Positions 22,146 through 53,474 of a stretch of 64,000 nucleotides of DNA are shown here, piece by piece. Where the stretch lies: sequence record PV037725.1; one strand, written 5' to 3'. The notes under the pieces were generated by a model. The model was not told where the DNA came from. It worked only from the letters and a program-made list of their open reading frames with translations, and did no database searches. Each line of letters starts with the position of its first letter. Position 1 is the first letter of the stretch. The position numbers and the translations under genes were made by a program.

Positions 22146-22158
22146 AGATTTATATTAC
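22146..22158 (+). promoter_or_regulatory. Early (virion RNAP) promoter
   Basis: AGATTTATATTAC; TATATTAC is the published phiKZ early-promoter motif; identical 13-mer at 53246. Confidence 0.75.
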
Positions 22159-28138: not shown

Positions 28139-28146
28139 TATATTAC
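28139..28146 (+). promoter_or_regulatory. Early promoter motif
   Basis: TATATTAC, 22 nt after terminator and 43 nt before next ATG. Confidence 0.6.
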
Positions 28147-28539: not shown

Positions 28540-28547
28540 TATATTAC
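28540..28547 (+). promoter_or_regulatory. Early promoter motif
   Basis: TATATTAC in intergenic region. Confidence 0.6.
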
Positions 28548-31821: not shown

Positions 31822-32688
31822 TCACCCACGTAGCCAGTTAGGCTGACGGATACCGCGAGCACGTTCCCAACCCAACGAGTGGATCAAGTCAGATACGTCA
31901 TGTACCACCGACTCAAGACCAAGGTTAGTACGACGCTGAGCTTCGTCCTGCAAGCGCCAGAGAGTATCTGGAGTGATGATGCGCTCTGGTTTACATTCAG
32001 CCTCAGAGAAGCCCTCAAGAGCTGGAGAGGTATATTTGTTAGCTGTGAAGATACCGCCCTCACCAACGAAGTCCCAAGTTGAGATTTCACGAGTGTACTT
32101 AACACCACGGTAAGGATCATCTTGAGTGATGGACCTCACCGAGCAATAAGTATTGATACTAGGGTTATCCAGAGAGTCTTTGAATACTTTAGCGTAAGGA
32201 CCGTATGGCTTGGCTTCAGCAATTACCATAGTAACTGGCTTACCTTCCTCATTCTTACCCGGCATCAAAGTCAGGTTACGAACGTGGGCACACACACGGT
32301 TATCATCAATCTGACGAATACGGCAAAGGTACTCAGTATCAGACATTGGTTTACGAACTACACGACCATCGATCAGTAAGTCAACGAACGGCTCAGGGTG
32401 TTTGAATTCCATGAACAGAACGCCTTTCTTCAATCGGCGCATAAGAGCACTGTTGGGTTCGAACATAGCTCGACCCGAGGCTTCATCGTAAAACATACCA
32501 GCGGAGTTATGAGTGCCATAACTACCAACCACCAGAGTGTAATAACCTTGAGCGTCAGCTGGAAGGATACCACGTTTGTTAGTGCCAGCCAACATAGCAC
32601 ACCCAACTGTAACAGCCGAGTGTGATGTCGGAACCTGACCCATTTGGTTGGGGATCGTGCGACCCGCAACAATACCATTCAGATTCAT
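31822..32688 (-). CDS. Prohead (head maturation) serine protease (phiKZ gp175 / SPN3US gp245-like)
   Basis: MEFKHP (His), RVCAHV, KPYGPY, YCSVRS (Ser), TWDFVGEGG; C-terminal ALE|G candidate autocleavage site; synteny. Confidence 0.82.
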   Translation of the reverse strand: MNLNGIVAGRTIPNQMGQVPTSHSAVTVGCAMLAGTNKRGILPADAQGYYTLVVGSYGTHNSAGMFYDEASGRAMFEPNSALMRRLKKGVLFMEFKHPEPFVDLLIDGRVVRKPMSDTEYLCRIRQIDDNRVCAHVRNLTLMPGKNEEGKPVTMVIAEAKPYGPYAKVFKDSLDNPSINTYCSVRSITQDDPYRGVKYTREISTWDFVGEGGIFTANKYTSPALEGFSEAECKPERIITPDTLWRLQDEAQRRTNLGLESVVHDVSDLIHSLGWERARGIRQPNWLRG

Positions 32689-42469: not shown

Positions 42470-45400
42470 ATGGCTAAACAGAATGTGCCTCTCAGAAAAC
42501 CGAAAGGTTCTGATGGTGAAGGCAATATTAAAGTACCCGGTGGCCCAGTAGTATTGGACCTCGGTGACTTCGACGACATCTTCGGTCCCATGGACGCTGA
42601 ATCACCCAAGAACGGTCCACTGGGTCAATTCTACTCTGGGCTCAAAGACTCGCTCGGAAATAGGTTTAAAACGAAAGATATCGTGCGTAACTTCTTACGC
42701 TCGGCGGCTCCTGATGGTTTATCTAACGTCATGGGTTTTGCTGACGAAGCTATGGCTGCGACTCGCGATATCAAAGAATCGATTGAGCGTACTAACGCTG
42801 CCGATTTACAATACATCGCTCAACGCGCTCAAAAAGTTTTACCTCAGCTTAAAGACTACGTCTCGGAAGACACTTACAACGACATCAACCAAGGTCTAGA
42901 GAATAAGATTGAAGAGTATGATTACACCGTTCAATCGGGTCGTGATCAAACTGCAATCCGTCGGGCACGTCAAGACGAATCTGATACCAATCAGATTAAA
43001 GCGGCGATGGATAACATCGCACTGACTGACCGTCTTAACCATAACAAGTCTGAACAGGGTGCAAACGCACGTCATAACCAAACACGTGCTGAGAACTCCA
43101 TTCGTGATGTACTGTCTACTCGACGCTTTGACTTCGTGGCTAAGTCCATGGGTATGGCGGTAGACTCCTTACAGCGGATCGTAGGCTACAAAGAACAAGT
43201 TGATTACGGGTTCCAACGTAAAGGTCTGGAACTACAATTCCGTAGTTACTTGGGTATCAAAGAACTGGTTAAGTTATCGGAAGCACACTTAGAGCTTAAC
43301 GCTCGTGCTTATAACTCGATGATTCGCAACACCGGTATCCCTGATCATGAGAAACGTGGTCGTAATGACCTAACTCAAATGGGTCAAGGTTCGGATAAGC
43401 GTGGCTTTGCTTCTAAAGCAATTCAAGCGGTAGGCGGTAAGACCCTCTCCCAGTTCTACGGTAACTATAGTGGTGATGTACAGTCTCGCGTACAGAACTC
43501 GCTGAGTCAGAAATTGAGCATGGCTACTATGGCCATGAAGATGGGTGAGAACGGACCTAGCCTATGGGATAACAAATATTCCATGGCTGGTAACCTAGCA
43601 GGCGATTACCTGTCTGACTTCCTCATCAATGACCTGGTGCCAATGTTAGGTCGTGAAGCACGTGGTCCTTTGACTAAGCTCTCCGATAGACATGGTGGTC
43701 GTCACAACCAAGCTGGCTACTTCCTGGACAACATGCCTGCATTCTTGCAGGAGTTTGTGAATAACAACCAGAACTCTCGTGGTATCAAAGGTGGCATTCG
43801 AAATCTGATAGCGCCTTATGTCCCACAATTTGGTTTGCAGGATCGTGTTCAGAACGGAACGTTCCAAACAATTGACCAGCATGCGACGTTTAACCAAGCA
43901 ACCCAACGTAGTATCGTTGATGCGATCCCCGGTTATCTTGCCCGTATACTGCAAGAGATGCGCATGATCCGTACTGGTAGTGATGATGTAGCACGTGAAG
44001 TGTTCGACATGACTAACGGTAAGTTTGGCCTTGAGAAAGCTGCGCATGATAACTTGCAGAACCGTATTGTTCCTGAGAACGCAGTTAGAGTAGCCTCGTC
44101 TACTATTAACGATGCACTCAATCAAATGGATAAAGATGGTAAGTTGAGTCCACAGGCACGTAAAGCCCTGGGTGAACGCTTATTACGCGATGGTTCGTCT
44201 AACAACCGCTTCGATCCAGAAGCCTACATCCGCTCGCGTGGCTATGCACAAGGTACAAGTCCTGAAGTAGCTAAGGAATTGGAAGAACACTTCCGTAGTC
44301 AGTTCAAGTTCGATGAAGACGGTAAGATGTCTGACACGTCCGAGAACCATAAACTGCGCCAAGAGTTCTCTCAAGCATTCTTGGATATCCGTAGTATCTC
44401 TCGTGACCCAATCAAAGAGATCAACCGGTTGATTAACTCTGGTCACACTGAACCATTGCGTGCAATGGGTATCATTGTTACTGAGAAAAATCAGGATCGG
44501 ATTAACTATCCACGTATCTGGGAAATCCTTCGTCAAGGTGTGAGCGATCACAACCCGTATGCTGAGGGTGGTAGTGGTTATGATCCATATGCAGTAGACA
44601 ACTCGGGTACCGTGGGGCATAAGAACTTCATGGGTCCTGAACACCCAGGCTTAGGCAAAGCGTTCGTTATGAACAACATGCGTAAGTTCCGAACCAAGTA
44701 TGCTCCTGAAGAGCAAGCTGCTCGCGATGCCACAGCTAAGCACCTTAAGGCCCTACGTGGTCGTTTCGGTAGTGCTGCTAAAAACGCCCAGGATACGTTT
44801 GCTGACCTCACAGGCGGTAAGGGTACTGACTATACTCCGGGTATTAAAGGCTTCTCCCAGATGATGTCTGGAGGGCCAGGATTTGGTCCGCAGAACATGG
44901 CGGGGGGTTATCAGGCGTTTATCGGTGAGAAAGTCAATGAGCACAAAGAAAAGCTGAAAGGTTATGGTGTAGATGGGATGCAGGAACTGACGGACTTGTA
45001 CAGTTCGTTTGATCCAACGCAACCTTTGATCAAGGGTATTGACTTCGGCATGGGCGACCTGATCGACGTTAACACCAAGAAGATCGTAACTAAACCATCT
45101 GACATTACAGGCGAAGTCATCAACCGGCTAGGTCAGACTGTAGTAACGGCAACCGAAGCTGCCGCAGGTCTACTCAACCCTAAAGGTGAGTTAGCGGTTA
45201 AAGTAAGCGATACTTTTAATAGCATCGTTGATAAAGCGATCGGCCTCCATCGTAACATTAATGGTGAGCGATCGGCGAGCAGTGAACCTACCGATCCTAA
45301 TAATCCTGACGAACTCAATAAGCAAGACTGGTCTTTAGGTCCTGGTGAGAATCCAATCCTTCTGGCTCGTGGCTTTATGAACGGGGAGTATAAGGATGCT

Positions 45401-48400
45401 GCTGGTAAGGTAATCAACTCTATCGCTGATATTGCATCTGACGTTTACGATAACGCCGGTAACTTGGTAGTGTCGGCTAAAGAGTTCGCTAACGGCCTGT
45501 GGTCTAAACGTAGTGGTAAACGCTATCGTCCAACTAAAGGCTTTGCACGACTACTCAAAATGGCCCAGGGCGCAGGTAAGTACTCTGGTACAACCGCAAC
45601 TGGTTTGGCTTTCGGTGCATTGAAGTTCTCAGCTAAGGCTGCATTGGGTATTGCCAAAACGGCATTCAACTTCGTTATGGATAACCAGAACGCTTACCTA
45701 CCGGGTGAGGCGGTTCCAGTTATTACACGTCGTCAATTGCAGGCAGGTGAATACTACGACGATAAAGGTAAAGTTGTTGAAGACTTTGTCGACGTATACT
45801 CACCGATGTATAATGCTCAAGGTGAGGCTGTTATTGCACCAGAGCTGTACAAGCAACTAACTAACTTCGATGGTTCCAAACACGCCCTGGCTAAGAACCG
45901 TCGCATCTGGGCTAAGTACATCATGCGCCCACTTCGGGCCGTGCGTGATGCTTACATGCGTCAGACCAAGAAGTACTACAAGTGGTTAGGTAAAACGACT
46001 ACTCGTGTTGGTGGTGCTGTCGGCCGTAAGTTGTTTGGTGGATTCGCTAAGATGGGCGGTAAGGTATTTGACTCGATGTTTGAATCAGTCGAGGACCCAA
46101 ATGCTAAAGCTCAGATTGACGCCACCTTAATGGCTTCACAGCAACAGACTTCTGTAATGGAACAAGTGTTGCAAGCTGTACGTGACCTTAAGCCGAAAGA
46201 ACTCCGTAAAGGTAGTTGGCAGGCCAAGGAAGCGAGTAAGGCTGCTGCCGGTGACGGTAAGAAAGGCGATGGTAAGGATGATGACGCCAAGCAACAAGGT
46301 TTCCTCAAGCGTGGCCTAGCTGGGTTGGCTTCGATGTTAGGTCTTGGTGGTAATAAAGACTCCGACGAGGAAGACGATGATGGTTTCGGCTTAGACGATG
46401 CTGCGGATCTTGCTGACATCGGTGACGCCGTTGGTGATCACAGAGAGCGTAGACGCCGTCGTCGACGTCCAGGTAAGAAAGGTTGGTTTGGTAATCTATG
46501 GGACAAGGCTAAGAACTCCCGTGTTGGTAAATGGGGTGGTACTATCCTTGAAAAGGCGGGGCAATCACGTCTGGGCCAAATGGCGGTTAAGCCATTACTC
46601 CAAGTAGCTAAACGTCCTACCTTCTGGGCCGCTGTGGCAACTACGGCTGCTGTAGCAGGTACTTACTTGTGGTCGAGTATCAAAGACTCATCTGGTGACT
46701 TCCGACGTCTCCGGTTATCGCAATACGGTATTTGGGGCATGCGTCGTGAACTCAAGGTACTCGAGCTTGAGACGTTGTTAGAGCAATTCACCGATAAGGT
46801 ATCTGACAACCCATCGTTTAGTCTGAGTGGTGCTGGCGCTAAGCAAATGCTTTCGATCATGGGTCTTGATATTGAGAACCAGACTGAGGTGATGAACTTT
46901 GCTAAGTGGCTTGAACTACGTTTCAAACCAATCTACCTTGCGTGGATTGGTGGGTTAAACAAAGTGGGTCAAAGCCAAGTTAAAATTAATGAGGTTGATG
47001 ACAAGCTACCTAAAGAACTCAAAGCCGACTTCCTTGAAACCATCCGATTCCCGTACAACAACGAATCACCTTACTCGGTTCTGATCAACCCGTTTGATCC
47101 AGATGACACTCCTGAACCTAACATGGATTATATCTCCAAGTTGTTCGATGAACTCAAAGCCGAGTTTGATCCTGAACGTAAGAAGGATGACGCCAAAGTA
47201 GATGGTAAGAAGGTATCCAAAGAAGATATCGCCAAAGGTGCTGCCGCGGCAGGTGGTGCAGCTGCTGTTACTAGTGATAACCCAGCTAAAGACATCGTTA
47301 AGAAACAAGCCGATGAAAAGGCTAAGAATGGCGATATTCTTAAAACTGGTATTGCTGCTACAGCGGCTACCTCGTCGAGCATGTCGGGTACGATTGCTGC
47401 ATTGAACGCACGTATTGGTAACACCGTAACGGCGCTCCAAGCGATTCGTATGCGGGCGTACGGTCTTCAAACACTGCAACTGTCCGATGTACGTAGTCTG
47501 CTGGCCTTAGAAGCAGTTTACGCCAAAGACCTTACCGCGGTGGATGATGTTGTTGACTACTCAGGTGACGATCAGAAGCTGTTAGCAGCGGCTGGTACAT
47601 TACTGGGTAAAGACACATCTGTTGGTTCCACCGATCGACCAAAGTTGTATAACTGGTTGATGCAACGATTTGGTCCCACCTTCCGTGCTTACTACGGTAC
47701 AGCGAAACAATTGAACCCATCGGCTGACCTTAAGACTTTGGAAAACAAGTTAAAGGGTGCGGATAAGGTATCGGTTGGTCAGGCTGTGTTGGGTGCAGTA
47801 TTCCGACACGATCAGACGGTTTGGGAATGCGATAGTATCTTTGATGTTAAAGGTCCACTTGCAGATCTCAAACGTTTAGCTGATGCTGACCTTGAACATC
47901 TAAAGAAAGAAGCTGAGAAAGAAGTCGTAGACTCTCCGACACAGAAAGGCTCTGATCAGATGGCTGGGAAGAATGCTGCTGATACAGGCGGTAGCTTCAC
48001 GGACAAGGTAATCGGTAAGATCAAAGACGCATGGGACTCGAGTAAAGAGACTATCTCTAATACTTGGAACCGTGCATCTGAAGCCGCTAAGGATACTTAC
48101 GCTGGGGCTAAGATCGCAGTTGGTATGGGTCCTGACTACGGTGAGGGCGGCGCATCTGGTGGCGTTATCAAGTCATCCGGTACTGGTGGCGAGATAATCT
48201 CAGGTACTGGCGGTAAGTTTGAGGAACTCCCTTATCCTTCTGCTAACAGTTCCATCAAAGCGGCATACCCAACTCTGTTGGCTGCCGGTAAGATGACTGG
48301 CGTACCGGTGGATTGGTTGACTGTGATTGCTGGTATTGAATCTGCATTTAACTACACCATCAAAGCTAAGACCTCTAGTGCAACTGGTTGGTACCAATTT

Positions 48401-49438
48401 ATCGATGGTACCTGGGATGAAATGGTTAAGAAGTATGGTCCTAAGTACGGTATCCCTGGACTCGGTCAAGACCCTGAACGTAAAGCTCGGAAAGACCCAC
48501 GTGCTTCCGCCCTGATGGGTGGTGAGTTCATTAAGAGCAACTACGATACTGTTAGTAAAGGTATCGGACGTAAAGACTTGACTGACACAGATATCTACAT
48601 GGCTCACTTCTTAGGCCCTGGCGGCGCTATCAAGTTCCTCAAAGCCGACCCTAATGCAATGGCTTACAAGATCTTCAGTAAGGAGTACTCGGCTAACATG
48701 TCGATCTTCTTCGTTGATGCTAAGCCTTCGCAACCACGGACTATTTCAGCAGTCTACAAGCTTTTCCAAGCTAAGATGGACAAATTCTGGAATACTACGG
48801 GTAAGGGTTACCGTCAAGGTGAAGCTGGGCAACCGTCTAACGACGCCAATGCCGATTCTCAAACACCGGGTGCGGTAGAGAACAGCAGTACTGCTGATTC
48901 TGAAGCCATGAAGAATAAGCTGAAGGACGAGGCTGGCTCTAAAGACGGACTGGGTAGTGATTCTCCTGATGGGCAACCATCTGGTGATACCCCGATCGAA
49001 CAAGGTGCTGGCACTGGTTCCATTCAGAAGCTTGCTCGGGATACAGCGCCGATGCCAGGTGCTCCAACTAGTGGTGGTGGTACTGGTAGTAATTCTTCGA
49101 CCAACGCGACAGGTACTGATTCGGGTAGTGGTACAGCTGACAGCCAGCAACAAAGTCAGATGGATGCTGCACAGTCTCAGAACAACCGTCGGGCAGCTGA
49201 AGTTAAACGTGAACGTGAAGCGGCTAACGCAGTGAATGATATTCAGTCTAAACAGCTGAATGCACTCTACGAGATCCGTGACCTTCAACAACTTCAATTG
49301 GATAACTCCAAAGATTTGTTGAAGGCGTTCTCAGCCGCGCAATCCGCAGGTGGCCAAGGTTCAGGTAATAATATGAATCCGTCCACCATGCAAGGTCGCC
49401 CGGCTGCTCAGCGTAACAGCAGCTTAACCCTTCGCTAA
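42470..49438 (+). CDS. Tail-associated lytic transglycosylase / tape-measure-like protein (phiKZ gp181-like)
   Basis: 2322 aa; SLT domain IAGIES...[17 protein letters not shown]...DPRASALMG...[11 protein letters not shown] near the C-terminus; internal hydrophobic helices. Confidence 0.9.
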
Positions 49439-49442
49439 CACT

Positions 49443-49467
49443 GGTCGGTCCTTCGGGACCGACCTTT
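49443..49467 (+). terminator. Hairpin terminator / processing stem
   Basis: GGTCGGTCC-ttcg-GGACCGACC-TTT. Confidence 0.7.
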
Positions 49468-49488
49468 ATCCCTTTCGAGGTTTCAACA

Positions 49489-51471
49489 ATGGCCGAAGAT
49501 CTACAACCCATCTGGCTCCGGAAAGCATTCATGCTCCCGGTAAGCTATGATAAGAATAACTATGGTTCCGGGGCTAAGCGTCGCGGGGCTAACTCAGCAG
49601 CATTCAAATTTACAAACACATCCCCTGGTGGTAGTTTCCCGATTAACATGCTTCCTCAATACACTCGGTATGCCGACATTCGTGTTCCGGGTCGAGGGCG
49701 TAGTCACGGCGACCGATTCCTGGGTATGGGCCGTTACTACTCAGAAGCACATGACGACACTAAACAAGAAATTCACATGTCGTTCGGCGTTCCACGATTC
49801 AGTAGCTGGACTAGCTTCTTTACTAACTTTTACGACCGAAGTGCGGCGTCCATGGCTAACACTGGTGCAGGTAGCGGCTTGTGGTATAACCTAGGTAACG
49901 CTGCTGGTTTGTTAGTGTCTCTGCCGATGCAACCGTTCATCTTGGGTCTAACTGGTACGATGCGCGTCATTAGCTTCTTGACTAAGTCACAACCATCCAA
50001 GTGGTTCTACTTTAAACCAACTATGCATACGTACTGGTCTTCGGTTAACACCCTAGCAAACGAATTTGCAATTGGTTTAGGTATTACGCCATGGTTCTGG
50101 GCTAAAGAAGATGATCCATTGGCTACACCAGGTGAAACGGTTACTAAGGCCAACCTTGCTGAGATCCACCGTATCTTCCCTACCCTATTCCGTGAGGACG
50201 GTGGTATCGATGTGATGGCTCTAAGTGGGCGTGCACAGCGTATGTCGGATGCTTCTCAGAAGTCTACCAAGGCATTGATGGAGAAAGCTCGGACCATCGA
50301 TGAACTTAACGCTGCAACGCAGAAAGCTATGGCTATGCCTATTGAAGATCCAGATCCGGGTATGGACGCACGGAAATACTTCCTCAAGTATGTTGACACT
50401 ATTGATAAGAAAGCCACCCAAGATGAAACCGGTATCGTAGATAACGAATTCTTCTCTAGCTGGTCTGATCTACAACACATGTACAAATATGTTGTAGGCG
50501 CACAGCACGATGGTCAGCAGTTCGTTACTTTACGAGCTGACTATAATGGTGAAGTATCTGAGAGCTTTAGTAACTCCACCAAAGACGTAGGTGTTGTACA
50601 GACGCTTAACACAAAAGTGAATGAAGGTCGTACCGCAGCATTCAACTTCATGGGTGGTAACATCACGGAAGGTGTAGGTGCCATGACGGGTATGATTGCC
50701 GACTTCGTTACTGGCGCATTAGACTCAGTCAACTTAGGTGGTCTGAGTATCTTGACGGGTTCCGCTTTCGTAGACGTCCCGGAGTATTGGGATTCTGCAA
50801 TGGCTTCTTTACCAACAGCGCAATACACCATTCCACTGATTACACCGTACGGTAACGTTATCTCCCGGTTCTTGAACATCTACCTACCGTTAGCCATGAT
50901 CCTCCCAATGGGCCTACCGAGGTCGGCCGGGCGTTCTGCATACACAGCCCCATTCTTGGTACAGATGTTCCATAAAGGGCGCGTACAACGTCAGCTGGGG
51001 ATTGTGGATTCTATCCAGATCCGTCGCGGTACTGGTAACGTAGGTTGGAACGCCAACCACGAGATGCTCGGCTGTGAAGTAACCATCGGTGTTAAAGACC
51101 TTTCGAAGATCATGCACATTCCCATTAAAGGTGGCTTTGCTTCCTCGAGTTGGATTGGTACTGGTGCTAAGTGGGCAACGGCTACCGCAGCTGAAGCCGC
51201 TGGTGGTGACGCAGCGTTAGGTGCAGCGCTGGCAGTGACTGATGGTGCAGTGTGGGATGAACAATCGCTATTCAACGATTACGTCGCAACGCTGTGCTCT
51301 CAAAGTTGGAGTGATCTGTACTACGCTGGTAAGCGGTTGAACCTAAACCTTACTCGTACAGTACAGTCATTTAAAAGTTGGCGCTCACCTTCGAACTTTG
51401 CTTCGTGGGTATTGGATGGAGACGTGGCTCGAACACTGTCGGCATTCGTACAAACAACATCTCGATTCTAA
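49489..51471 (+). CDS. Tail tip/baseplate hub protein (phiKZ gp182-like)
   Basis: 660 aa directly after gp181-like gene; [24 protein letters not shown]; C-terminal [12 protein letters not shown] beta-rich region. Confidence 0.7.
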
Positions 51472-51543
51472 ATATTACTGGGTAGGTAGATTCTACAGAG
51501 GATCTACCGGTCCCAGACTTTATTCCCTAATCGAGGCTTCGAC

Positions 51544-52035
51544 ATGTTTAAGAGTTTTATCTTGTGGTTGGTAACTAAGTTCCTGACAGCGCGTGAACGT
51601 TTGCAGTTGGTCGTCAAGGATGGCTTTGCAGATGACCCACGCCGTGTGATCAATAACTTGTATCATCTAGCACACTCTGATGGTAAGGGTAAGACCCTTG
51701 TCCCGTTTGATCGTATCGCAGCAAAAGCGCTGTCCGAATATGACCTATCTGGTAATGTATACGTCACAGTGTTGTTTGCATTGAAGCAGAAATTGTACCG
51801 CTGCGGTTCCGAAAAATGTGAAGGTAATGATTACCTCGAGTTCTTCCGCAAAGTAAACATCATTAAAGATCATAGTAACCGATTGAAGGTAACTAAAGAT
51901 CTGACCAATCTGATCATCTCAGAAACCACGTTCGGTACCGAACAAGATATTACGCTGGTAGTGAATGTATTGCAACACCAATACCTTGACCCTGAAATCA
52001 TCGCTAAATTCCTTACTGCTGGAGAATCCAAATGA
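51544..52035 (+). CDS. Hypothetical protein
   Basis: GAGG SD, 163 aa, coupled to next gene. Confidence 0.65.
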   Translation: MFKSFILWLVTKFLTARERLQLVVKDGFADDPRRVINNLYHLAHSDGKGKTLVPFDRIAAKALSEYDLSGNVYVTVLFALKQKLYRCGSEKCEGNDYLEFFRKVNIIKDHSNRLKVTKDLTNLIISETTFGTEQDITLVVNVLQHQYLDPEIIAKFLTAGESK

Positions 52036-52553
52036 AACTGTTCCGTAACCTTGCTAAATCCCTGTACGAAGCTGTAGTTCCAGAAGCTGAGCGTCAAGAA
52101 GCTGCCATCGCTACAATCAGTGATGAACAACGTGCACAACTGGCCATTACGTTCTTCGGTCGTGAAGCTGCACTGCTGGATCGTGGCGGTCAAACTTACA
52201 AGCGCGCTAAACAAGCTGCCGAAGATCTGATCGTTAGTCACCACAGTGCCAGTTCGATTGGTCAAGTTCACCGGAAAGAGTTTACTCGTGTCGAATCTGA
52301 CGACTACGTGCAAGCTATGGTACTGGGCAACCTCTTGTCGAAGGACGGTGCAGCTGACCTGTCTGCTACGCCGGTATCACTGAGTAATCAACTCTTCGGT
52401 AAAATTGCGTCGGACGTAGATGCTGCACGACTCGAGAAGTCTTTCATTAAGCGTCGCAGTATCCTGCGTAACGCCATCAAACGTGAAGTGCCTTCGCTCG
52501 ATTCTGCTGACCTGACCCTGGCTGTTGAACTCGTAATCGCTATTAGAATGTAA
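52032..52553 (+). CDS. Hypothetical helical protein
   Basis: GGAG SD; ATGA-type overlap. Confidence 0.65.
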   Translation: MKLFRNLAKSLYEAVVPEAERQEAAIATISDEQRAQLAITFFGREAALLDRGGQTYKRAKQAAEDLIVSHHSASSIGQVHRKEFTRVESDDYVQAMVLGNLLSKDGAADLSATPVSLSNQLFGKIASDVDAARLEKSFIKRRSILRNAIKREVPSLDSADLTLAVELVIAIRM

Positions 52554-52582
52554 ATAGTGTGTAGTTCAACTTAAAAGGAAAC

Positions 52583-53194
52583 ATGATGGATAACATTCTC
52601 TCTGGTCTCAAGTGGGCCAAAGGTCTTGAATCTCAAGACGGTGCTGCACAGGTAGTTGATGTTAATGCGGTTAAGTCTCACATTGACATTGACGATGTGG
52701 AACAGAACGTTGGTGATGTTAGCGAGTCTGAACCTGATGCTATCGGTGACGGTGGTGATCACGTTAAGGCTGAGACTAACCATGATATCATCTCTGCTGA
52801 AACGATTGAAGTGGCTAGCGCTATCTCCGGTCAAGAAGGTGGTAAGGTGATTATCGCTGAAGCGGTTGATCCGATCTCCGGTGCACCTAAGCGCTTCGTA
52901 ATCTCTGGTTTCAATGCACAGACTAACCCTGCTGCTGAACCCGGTGATAACCTACTTAGTCTGGTGATCCTGTTGCAAAACGGTATCATCCCTGAAGTAG
53001 GTGTGAATGGTGTTACTTGCGAAGACCTGCTTAAAGTAGTTGAAGAAGTTTTCACCTGCTTCCAAGAAGGTAAGTTCGCATGTGAGGAAAACGATCAGGT
53101 CCTTCAAGGTGTACGCATGGCTCAAGCAGCTATTGCCCAACGCTTGGCCCGTCGGGAAGCTCAAGGTACCGAAGGTACTTACCAAGGTAACTGA
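52583..53194 (+). CDS. Tad1-like (Thoeris/CBASS signal sponge) protein with acidic N-terminal extension
   Basis: SGAPKRFVISGF...LLQNGIIPEVGVNGVTCEDLL...FQEGKFACEEN...RLARREAQGTEGT follows the Tad1 pattern (GGAYHEYVI...FQKG...GV..DLL...FQAGPFSSREN...RR...R...GT). Confidence 0.82.
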   Translation: MMDNILSGLKWAKGLESQDGAAQVVDVNAVKSHIDIDDVEQNVGDVSESEPDAIGDGGDHVKAETNHDIISAETIEVASAISGQEGGKVIIAEAVDPISGAPKRFVISGFNAQTNPAAEPGDNLLSLVILLQNGIIPEVGVNGVTCEDLLKVVEEVFTCFQEGKFACEENDQVLQGVRMAQAAIAQRLARREAQGTEGTYQGN

Positions 53195-53226
53195 CATATC
53201 GCCCTTCCTTCGGGAAGGGCTTTATG
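53193..53226 (+). terminator. Hairpin terminator, conserved-flank family
   Basis: GACATATC-GCCCTTCC-ttcg-GGAAGGGC-TTTATG. Confidence 0.8.
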
Positions 53227-53245
53227 ACACATTACAAAAAATCTC

Positions 53246-53258
53246 AGATTTATATTAC
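53246..53258 (+). promoter_or_regulatory. Early (virion RNAP) promoter
   Basis: AGATTTATATTAC, identical to 22146; heads a long run of small + strand genes. Confidence 0.78.
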
Positions 53259-53291: not shown

Positions 53292-53474
53292 ATGAGACTT
53301 TTACTTTCTGTATCGTCTGATCTTACACGTATGTCGGTGGGTATTATTGACCAACTTGGTAATCCGGGTAAGGCAGTCGGCCGTATTCGCAAAAGGATTC
53401 TTAAAGGGTCATACACTAAACTTATGGTCATTAGTAAAACTGACGGCTATGACGTTTATGGCGACAAACTATGA
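53292..53474 (+). CDS. Hypothetical early protein
   Basis: AGGAG SD, 60 aa. Confidence 0.6.
   Translation: MRLLLSVSSDLTRMSVGIIDQLGNPGKAVGRIRKRILKGSYTKLMVISKTDGYDVYGDKL

Follow-up and report, generated by a model that had tools for sequence, protein, structure and literature searches.

The stretch of DNA analysed here, referred to as the window, comprises the last 64 kb of the genome of Pseudomonas phage Viktualia (PV037725.1, 322,655 bp; host P. syringae), a 201phi2-1-like chimallivirus. This report concerns one gene on its plus strand, the ortholog of PhiKZ (ΦKZ) gp184 and 201phi2-1 gp280, which is labelled 'hypothetical protein' in PV037725.1. Its product carries a C-terminal domain homologous to Tad1, a sponge of nucleotide defence signals, behind an N-terminal extension that is probably used for packaging into the phage head. 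The parts of the gene are as follows.

52583..53194, plus strand: whole open reading frame (ORF), ortholog of PhiKZ gp184 and 201phi2-1 gp280, 203 aa plus stop (TGA at 53192-53194)

52583..52630, plus strand: leader of the inner-body type, residues 1-16, ending G-L-E16, with a first cut predicted before S17 from homolog conservation

52631..52801, plus strand: acidic segment, residues 17-73, ending S71-A72-E73 (predicted second cut), predicted disordered with a predicted local distance difference test score (pLDDT) <50

52802..53191, plus strand: Tad1-like domain, residues 74-203, a four-strand sheet and two long helices; at 130 aa it has the size of a stand-alone Tad1

53060..53155, plus strand: codons of the pocket for glycocyclic ADP-ribose (gcADPR) and cyclic dinucleotides (CDN), F160, N170, R187 and R191, equal to CbTad1 F82, N92, R109 and R113

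An alternative start, the second ATG at 52586, gives a protein of 202 aa. This start is used in the GenBank record PV037725.1, the closest homologs have the same length of 202 aa, and the spacing of AAGGA at 52575-52579 is better for this ATG than for the one at 52583. Since the record starts at 52586 and the homologs are 202 aa long, the residue numbers of an earlier note made from the letters of this DNA (the sequence-only reading), which are kept here, are possibly one too high.

The sequence-only reading had recognised a Tad1 pattern in the C-terminal part of the protein, and the searches agreed with it. The Viktualia sequence alone, compared with PDB chains, matched CmTad1 (8kbb) at E=6.7e-7, and the profile of the family (57 members), compared with PDB sequences, matched CmTad1 at E=6.3e-19 and CbTad1 at E ~1e-16, in the latter case covering chain residues 4-121 of 123. 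The strongest PDB sequence match was 8y6v chain I, which is PhiKZ gp184 itself (E=3.4e-40 over residues 85-203), and phrog_23843 was matched over the full length at E=1.4e-93. In the AlphaFold2 (AF2) model computed from the family alignment, residues 78-200 are confident, with pLDDT mostly >90, and form strands at 78-82, 88-95, 102-108 and 126-131 and helices at 146-162 and 168-193, while residues 1-74 are predicted disordered except for a short helix at 6-16. All 20 significant Foldseek matches of this model in the PDB were Tad1 structures (20/20, probability 1.00), with target-normalised template modelling (TM) scores of 0.70-0.77, and the next match stood at E=0.48. The absence of a structural match to Tad1 had been named as a ground for giving up the idea; such a match is present. 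The PhiKZ gp184 sequence matched Tad1 chains at ~1e-5 to 1e-6, and its AF2 model gave the same Foldseek picture. Identity to the characterised Tad1 proteins is only ~25%. Because sequence, profile and fold all return Tad1, the likeness at the level of motifs reflects true homology, and the Viktualia domain is a genuine Tad1 homolog.

Pfam and PADLOC scans of the Viktualia protein returned nothing useful. A precomputed label for PF24729.3 (Acb2/Tad1 hairpin) was found on 50 of 56 homologs, whereas hmmscan of the same 56 homologs against PF24729.2 gave no match at E<=1, and of 65 more distant relatives only 5 were recognised by PF24729.2. This discrepancy is a difference of model version or threshold and is relevant for annotation.

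The characterised Tad1 proteins (CbTad1, 7uav, 7uaw, 8smd and 8kbe; CmTad1, 8kbb-d; SBSphiJ7 Tad1) share with the Viktualia domain the fold and the residues of the gcADPR/CDN pocket. However, they are stand-alone proteins of ~120-130 aa, are hexameric and have two extra pockets for cyclic trinucleotides (CTN), and the Viktualia protein, unlike them, carries a packaging leader and an acidic segment. Contact residues were taken from the preprint of Li et al. (10.1101/2023.11.15.567273) and transferred via HMMER alignments, with the chain offsets checked (the CmTad1 chain equals native +10, and CbTad1 8kbh_I equals native -1). The equivalents of F160, N170, R187 and R191 are kept in 57 of 57 family members, with F or Y at position 160. 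In CbTad1 these pocket residues contact the AMP-like moiety common to gcADPR and 2',3'-cGAMP (10.1101/2023.11.15.567273). The two residues of the CTN pocket, CmTad1 R88 and T95 (CbTad1 R90 and T97), correspond to E168 and Q175 in Viktualia, and across the family the arginine was found in 0/57 and the threonine in 0/57. The hexamer-interface residues K96, Q98, E99, M102, W103 and K106 of CmTad1 are likewise replaced, by G176, R178, M179, A182, A183 and Q186, respectively. The tryptophan whose replacement had been pointed out in the sequence-only reading is W103 of this interface (A183 here), and it is present in 1 of the 57 family members. The same ligand-site residues are retained and lost in PhiKZ gp184.

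The loss of the CTN-pocket arginine and threonine beside an intact gcADPR/CDN pocket is more telling than the replaced tryptophan. It leaves membership in Tad1 standing, because ~6% of Tad1 orthologs carry substitutions at the CTN site (Li et al., 10.1101/2023.11.15.567273), a minority that includes the gp184 clade. Since the arginine and threonine are absent across the gp184 clade, no CTN binding is predicted, and from its residues the clade is predicted to be a sponge for gcADPR, perhaps also for cyclic dinucleotides, that does not bind cyclic trinucleotides. The replaced interface residues suggest that gp184-clade Tad1 may be a dimer. As a separate observation, C167 (codon 53081-53083) is invariant in 57/57 members and aligns with CmTad1 C87, which makes a hydrophobic contact with the cyclic trinucleotide (10.1101/2023.11.15.567273); the cysteine is thus kept although the polar trinucleotide contacts are lost in the clade.

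The extension in front of the domain had been read as the acidic propeptide of a head protein. Its acidic nature was borne out, with 23.5% D+E and 3% K+R over residues 17-84 and a family median of 30% D+E over the equivalent of residues 17-77. However, the extension is more than a propeptide: a leader is followed by a segment whose PhiKZ counterpart is retained on the shell, and then by a second, predicted cut site. Motif counts were rejected as evidence of processing, since S/A/G-x-E occurs 6 times in the Viktualia protein versus 5.0 +/- 1.8 by chance, and because of this chance-level count only positional conservation was used. The block L9-x-W11-A12-x-[G/S]14-[L/I]15-E16-S17-x-D19-G20 is near-invariant across 52 long homologs. 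The site G14-L15-E16|S17, which had already been noticed near the N-terminus, lies within it; E16 is kept in 52/52 of these homologs, and G or S stands at P3 in 50/52. An S/A/G-x-E motif is also found within positions 66-78 in 51/52 homologs, and this second motif (E73/E74) lies 4-5 residues before the first strand of the Tad1 fold. In PhiKZ gp184 the corresponding G-H-E108 stands two residues ahead of the fold start, and a hinge of low confidence in its AF2 model, at 106-110, falls exactly on this motif. An exhaustive search with the profile, which yielded 5,295 representative clusters at E<=1e-3, showed that stand-alone Tad1-like proteins of 124-135 aa start at profile position 73-74. A cut at the second site would therefore release a 130-residue fragment equivalent to a natural stand-alone Tad1.

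Leaders of the same type, ending S-L-E at residues 11-13, occur in the PhiKZ inner-body or injected proteins gp93, gp94, gp95 and gp97 and in gp184 (N-termini from the ΦKZ record), and the Viktualia leader end G-L-E16|S-Q-D-G is close to S-L-E13|N-Q-D-G of gp97. The cut in PhiKZ gp93 was verified between Glu13 and Ser14, with Ser14 as the first ordered residue (PMC11297242). In gp93 the segment after this cut is retained on the shell and the rest of the protein is ejected; the cargo of gp93, gp94, gp95 and gp97 consists of helical PF12699-type domains of unassigned function and not of Tad1. The two-motif signature is confined to close members of the gp184 family. As a general trait of N-extended Tad1-like proteins, protease-type motifs at the domain boundary (19 observed versus 15.4 +/- 3.3) and near the N-terminus (21 versus 22.5) were both rejected. 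A protease suited to such sites is encoded 20 kb upstream of the Tad1 gene.

31822..32688, minus strand: prohead protease gene of the PhiKZ gp175 family, from Peptidase_S80 (PF20034, E=6.7e-89), phrog_3014 (head maturation protease) and the record annotation

Most of what is known about the behaviour of such proteins comes from PhiKZ. There, gp184 is an inner-surface minor capsid protein, described as 'mainly β-strands', which is cut by the gp175 protease and is partly visible in the capsid map, where it fills the gap between gp86 and a major-capsid subunit (PMC11297242). Injection of gp184 was validated by western blot (Fossati et al., PMC10449902). The injected construct bore a C-terminal 3xFLAG according to its name and primers (PMC10449902), and because the tag is C-terminal the Tad1 end is part of what is ejected. 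AntiDefenseFinder assigned gp184 as Tad1 (PMC11724313), a preprint on transposon mutagenesis from 2025 proposed a model in which N-termini are wedged in the capsid while C-termini are freed and injected (10.1101/2025.11.23.690004), and a review from 2026 states that Tad1 is injected by ΦKZ (PMC13282480). The 201phi2-1 protein gp280 and the Viktualia protein share 75% identity over the full length, both motif sites included. Virions were found to contain gp280 by mass spectrometry (note in the 201phi2-1 record); its gene has the same synteny as in Viktualia, with a different host, P. chlororaphis.

Identity between PhiKZ gp184 and the Viktualia protein is 57-59% over the Tad1 domain. Both proteins have the leader end x-L-E|S and a protease-type motif just before the fold, and both genes are placed after gp181-183 homologs; the N-terminal parts are otherwise barely alignable. 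The PhiKZ extension is ~95 residues long and contains a β-rich module, whereas that of Viktualia is the shorter (57-residue), more acidic, disordered segment. In the AF2 model of PhiKZ gp184 this module, a helix plus strands at about residues 50-100, has pLDDT 74-89; such a module agrees with the description 'mainly β-strands' (PMC11297242). PhiKZ residues ~45-107 form an insertion relative to the Viktualia / 201phi2-1 type. The 34 modelled residues of 8y6v chain I were matched by the PhiKZ gp184 model (97% identity, root-mean-square deviation 1.5 Å) and not by the Viktualia model, despite the Tad1 fold shared with PhiKZ gp184 at ~57% identity. The ordered residues are thus probably located in the extension, with the module at ~50-100 as their likely source. 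Since the capsid map shows order in no more than 34 residues of PhiKZ gp184, we infer from these models that the Tad1 fold would be free inside the head and not fixed to the shell. A match was found in 101 phage records, 64 of which are Pseudomonas jumbo phages; at least 80% of the protein was covered in 15 records, and the matching records are almost all annotated as hypothetical.

Based on these results, the Viktualia gene is probably (with a probability of about 0.7) a gp184 ortholog that encodes a late-made, three-part Tad1 precursor, which is packaged, cut twice, injected and able to bind nucleotide signals. The precursor would be made late in infection, and leader 1-16 would direct it into the prohead, where the Peptidase_S80 prohead protease would remove the leader after G-L-E16. 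Residues 17-73 would serve as an acidic flexible segment, whose PhiKZ equivalent appears to include the short piece ordered on the inner capsid surface. Further cleavage behind S-A-E73 would release the 130-residue Tad1 domain within the head, and in the following infection this domain would exit together with the DNA, ahead of the expression of any phage gene. In the infected cell it may then capture gcADPR, the signal of Thoeris, through F160, N170, R187 and R191, and perhaps cyclic dinucleotides as well. A pre-made sponge that arrives with the genome can act before phage transcription, when signalling defences of the Thoeris type decide the infection.

The loading of anti-defence proteins into the head by an N-terminal targeting sequence, followed by their ejection with the DNA, is classically known from T4 internal protein IPI* and P1 Dar, and the targeting sequence of IPI* is trimmed by the prohead protease. 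However, IPI* and Dar block restriction-type nucleases by protein-protein action and not by sequestering a signal, and no sequence relationship is known between them and the Viktualia protein.

The sequence-only reading had put forward the packaged and injected sponge as its main proposal. The idea is supported by the orthology with PhiKZ gp184 and 201phi2-1 gp280, but it is not new, as a packaged, injected Tad1 has already been published for ΦKZ gp184 and Viktualia is a further, unannotated ortholog. The locus extends the ΦKZ gp184 concept to 201phi2-1-like phages of plant-associated pseudomonads. What is added here is a concrete model of processing by two cuts, the second of them at the place where stand-alone Tad1 proteins naturally begin, and an extension in Viktualia without the ΦKZ-specific β module. 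The clade also lacks the CTN pocket and the hexamer-interface residues, and the prediction that it keeps only the gcADPR/CDN pocket qualifies the general view that CBASS and Thoeris are both blocked by ΦKZ Tad1 (CBASS, cyclic-oligonucleotide-based antiphage signalling system).

Several points weigh against the proposed mechanism. Virion presence, processing and injection in Viktualia are carried over by analogy from the orthologs, both cut sites in the protein are predictions made from its sequence, and their exact positions, like the binding of a ligand, are what we infer. The β-rich module of PhiKZ is absent from the Viktualia / 201phi2-1 type, and the shorter extension of this type may bind the shell differently or not at all. 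A literature search returned no ligand-binding or counter-defence measurement for any protein of the gp184 clade, and gp184 owes the name 'Tad1' to homology (AntiDefenseFinder) and to the citation of work on Clostridium and Bacillus Tad1. Moreover, according to a review, the ejected proteins of chimalliviruses are thought to enter the early-infection vesicle together with the DNA, where a sponge would have no obvious contact with cytoplasmic signals. The amount of protein could also be limiting. With five vertex-binding complexes per vertex (PMC11297242), ~55-60 copies would be delivered if there is one per complex, which would be a small buffering capacity.

The same facts bear on other explanations. 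The place of PhiKZ gp184 in the capsid map, between gp86 and the major-capsid subunit, and the clade-wide loss of the hexamer interface and the CTN pocket would suit a purely structural minor capsid protein, in which the Tad1 fold was co-opted as cement of the vertex-binding complex and binds no signal. However, the 34 ordered PhiKZ residues are probably outside the Tad1 fold, the C-terminally tagged gp184 was injected, and PhiKZ orf184 tolerates transposon insertions with a near-neutral competitive index, in contrast to the essential cement proteins gp28, gp91 and gp119 (10.1101/2025.11.23.690004). A purely structural role would hardly account for the retention of all four gcADPR/CDN pocket residues in 57/57 members, and it is considered very improbable. 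A delivered sponge for a ligand outside the Tad1 spectrum, for example another signal derived from ADP-ribose or another nucleotide signal in Pseudomonas defence, is distinctly unlikely. For such a ligand speaks the low identity to the characterised proteins, and the pocket loops vary among Tad1 homologs and set their ligand spectra (10.1101/2023.11.15.567273). Sponge families are also known to switch ligands (10.1101/2025.08.24.671296). However, none of the four residues in contact with the AMP-like moiety has been lost, and because of this the same ligand class is the simplest expectation.

The sponge might also act mainly in the producing cell, in the cytoplasm late in infection, with packaging adding little. 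The gene lies in a block of virion genes closed by a terminator, so high levels of the protein are expected late in infection. Probably few copies are delivered, and the ejected proteins may stay inside the early-infection vesicle. On the other hand, the strong conservation of the leader and of both cut motifs argues for selection on packaging and release, and signalling by Thoeris and CBASS should already count before the late genes are switched on. An action mainly in the producing cell is therefore regarded as unlikely, although it is compatible with delivery of the sponge by the virion and both could hold.

The delivered Tad1 precursor could be placed in a wider frame, which is proposed here only tentatively and is rather doubtful as a whole. 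The gp184 clade would be a distinct, dimeric variant of Tad1, specific for gcADPR/CDN after loss of the CTN pocket and pre-loaded by means of a two-cut precursor, and large phages would repeatedly have joined Tad1-like domains to N-terminal modules, capsid-associated or of other kinds. Examples are the fusions with a fragment of the PhiKZ-type major capsid protein and, in Burkholderia phage FLC9, with a cyclophilin that are described below.

The surroundings of the gene in the window are as follows.

42470..52553, plus strand: upstream genes in the same strand block, encoding a gp181-like protein of 2322 aa and a gp182-like protein of 660 aa (virion proteins), and two small ORFs

51544-52035 and 52032-52553, plus strand: the two small ORFs, between the gp182-like gene and the Tad1 gene

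53201..53220, plus strand: terminator-like hairpin, 8-bp GC-rich stem and 4-nt loop, then TTTAT

53251..53258, plus strand: promoter-like 8-mer TATATTAC, ~30 nt after the hairpin, at the start of the next gene block (first ORF at 53292)

The gp181-like and gp182-like genes are both upstream on the same strand, as the sequence-only reading had stated, and the order agrees with that in 201phi2-1. For the gp181-like protein (42470-49438, plus strand) the record gives 'tail fiber protein'; the protein has a transglycosylase region at residues 1922-2106 (phrog_4067, E=1e-41), in agreement with the cell-puncturing role noted for 201phi2-1 gp276.

Downstream of the gene, a terminator followed by an early promoter at 53246 had been proposed. 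The terminator part stood up well in direct folding, as the 46-nt stretch 53190-53235, which contains the hairpin, folds at a dG of -20 kcal/mol with z=-6.9. A consensus terminator scan did not report the hairpin at 53201-53220, because its T run is short. The promoter part fared less well: the 8-mer was not enriched in the window, where it has 4 sites, a number also reached in 12 of 100 shuffles. It may resemble the early promoters of ΦKZ. The arrangement of a hairpin end, ~30 nt and TATATTAC is repeated on the plus strand, with the 8-mer at 22151-22158, 28139-28146 and 53251-53258, and in this module a GC-rich hairpin ends in ...GGGCTTTATG(C/A)C upstream of TATATTAC. A fourth copy of the 8-mer, at 28540, has no hairpin. 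From its sequence, the module looks like a terminator-then-promoter unit between gene blocks, in which the promoter role is putative.

Tad1-like domains were also seen fused to other proteins. Six metagenomic relatives (P0144, P0146, P0101, P0141, P0116 and P0103) have an N-terminal fragment of a PhiKZ-type major capsid protein and a C-terminal Tad1-like domain. The fragment covers positions ~142-280 of 635 in the PF25620 profile (E down to 1e-24) and aligns to about residues 219-434 of the 719-aa head protein of Ralstonia phage RP31. These fusions were rejected as independent evidence of capsid targeting, since the fragment is the I-domain region and not the propeptide. A full fusion of the capsid fragment and Tad1 was found in no sequenced phage of the collection searched. 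In Xanthomonas phage RTH11, WJJ55076.1 is a stand-alone, 179-aa paralogue of the PhiKZ-type major-capsid fragment (PF25620 172-234, E=3e-13); its gene adjoins ribonucleotide reductase genes, and its downstream neighbour is not detectably Tad1-like. In Burkholderia phage FLC9, gp131 (LC667451.1, 135653-136669), annotated as a hypothetical protein, has two domains, a cyclophilin-type peptidyl-prolyl isomerase at residues 3-162 (E=2.5e-44) and, fused to it at residues 223-337, a Tad1-like domain that matched 8y6v_I at 6e-20 and CmTad1 at 1e-13.

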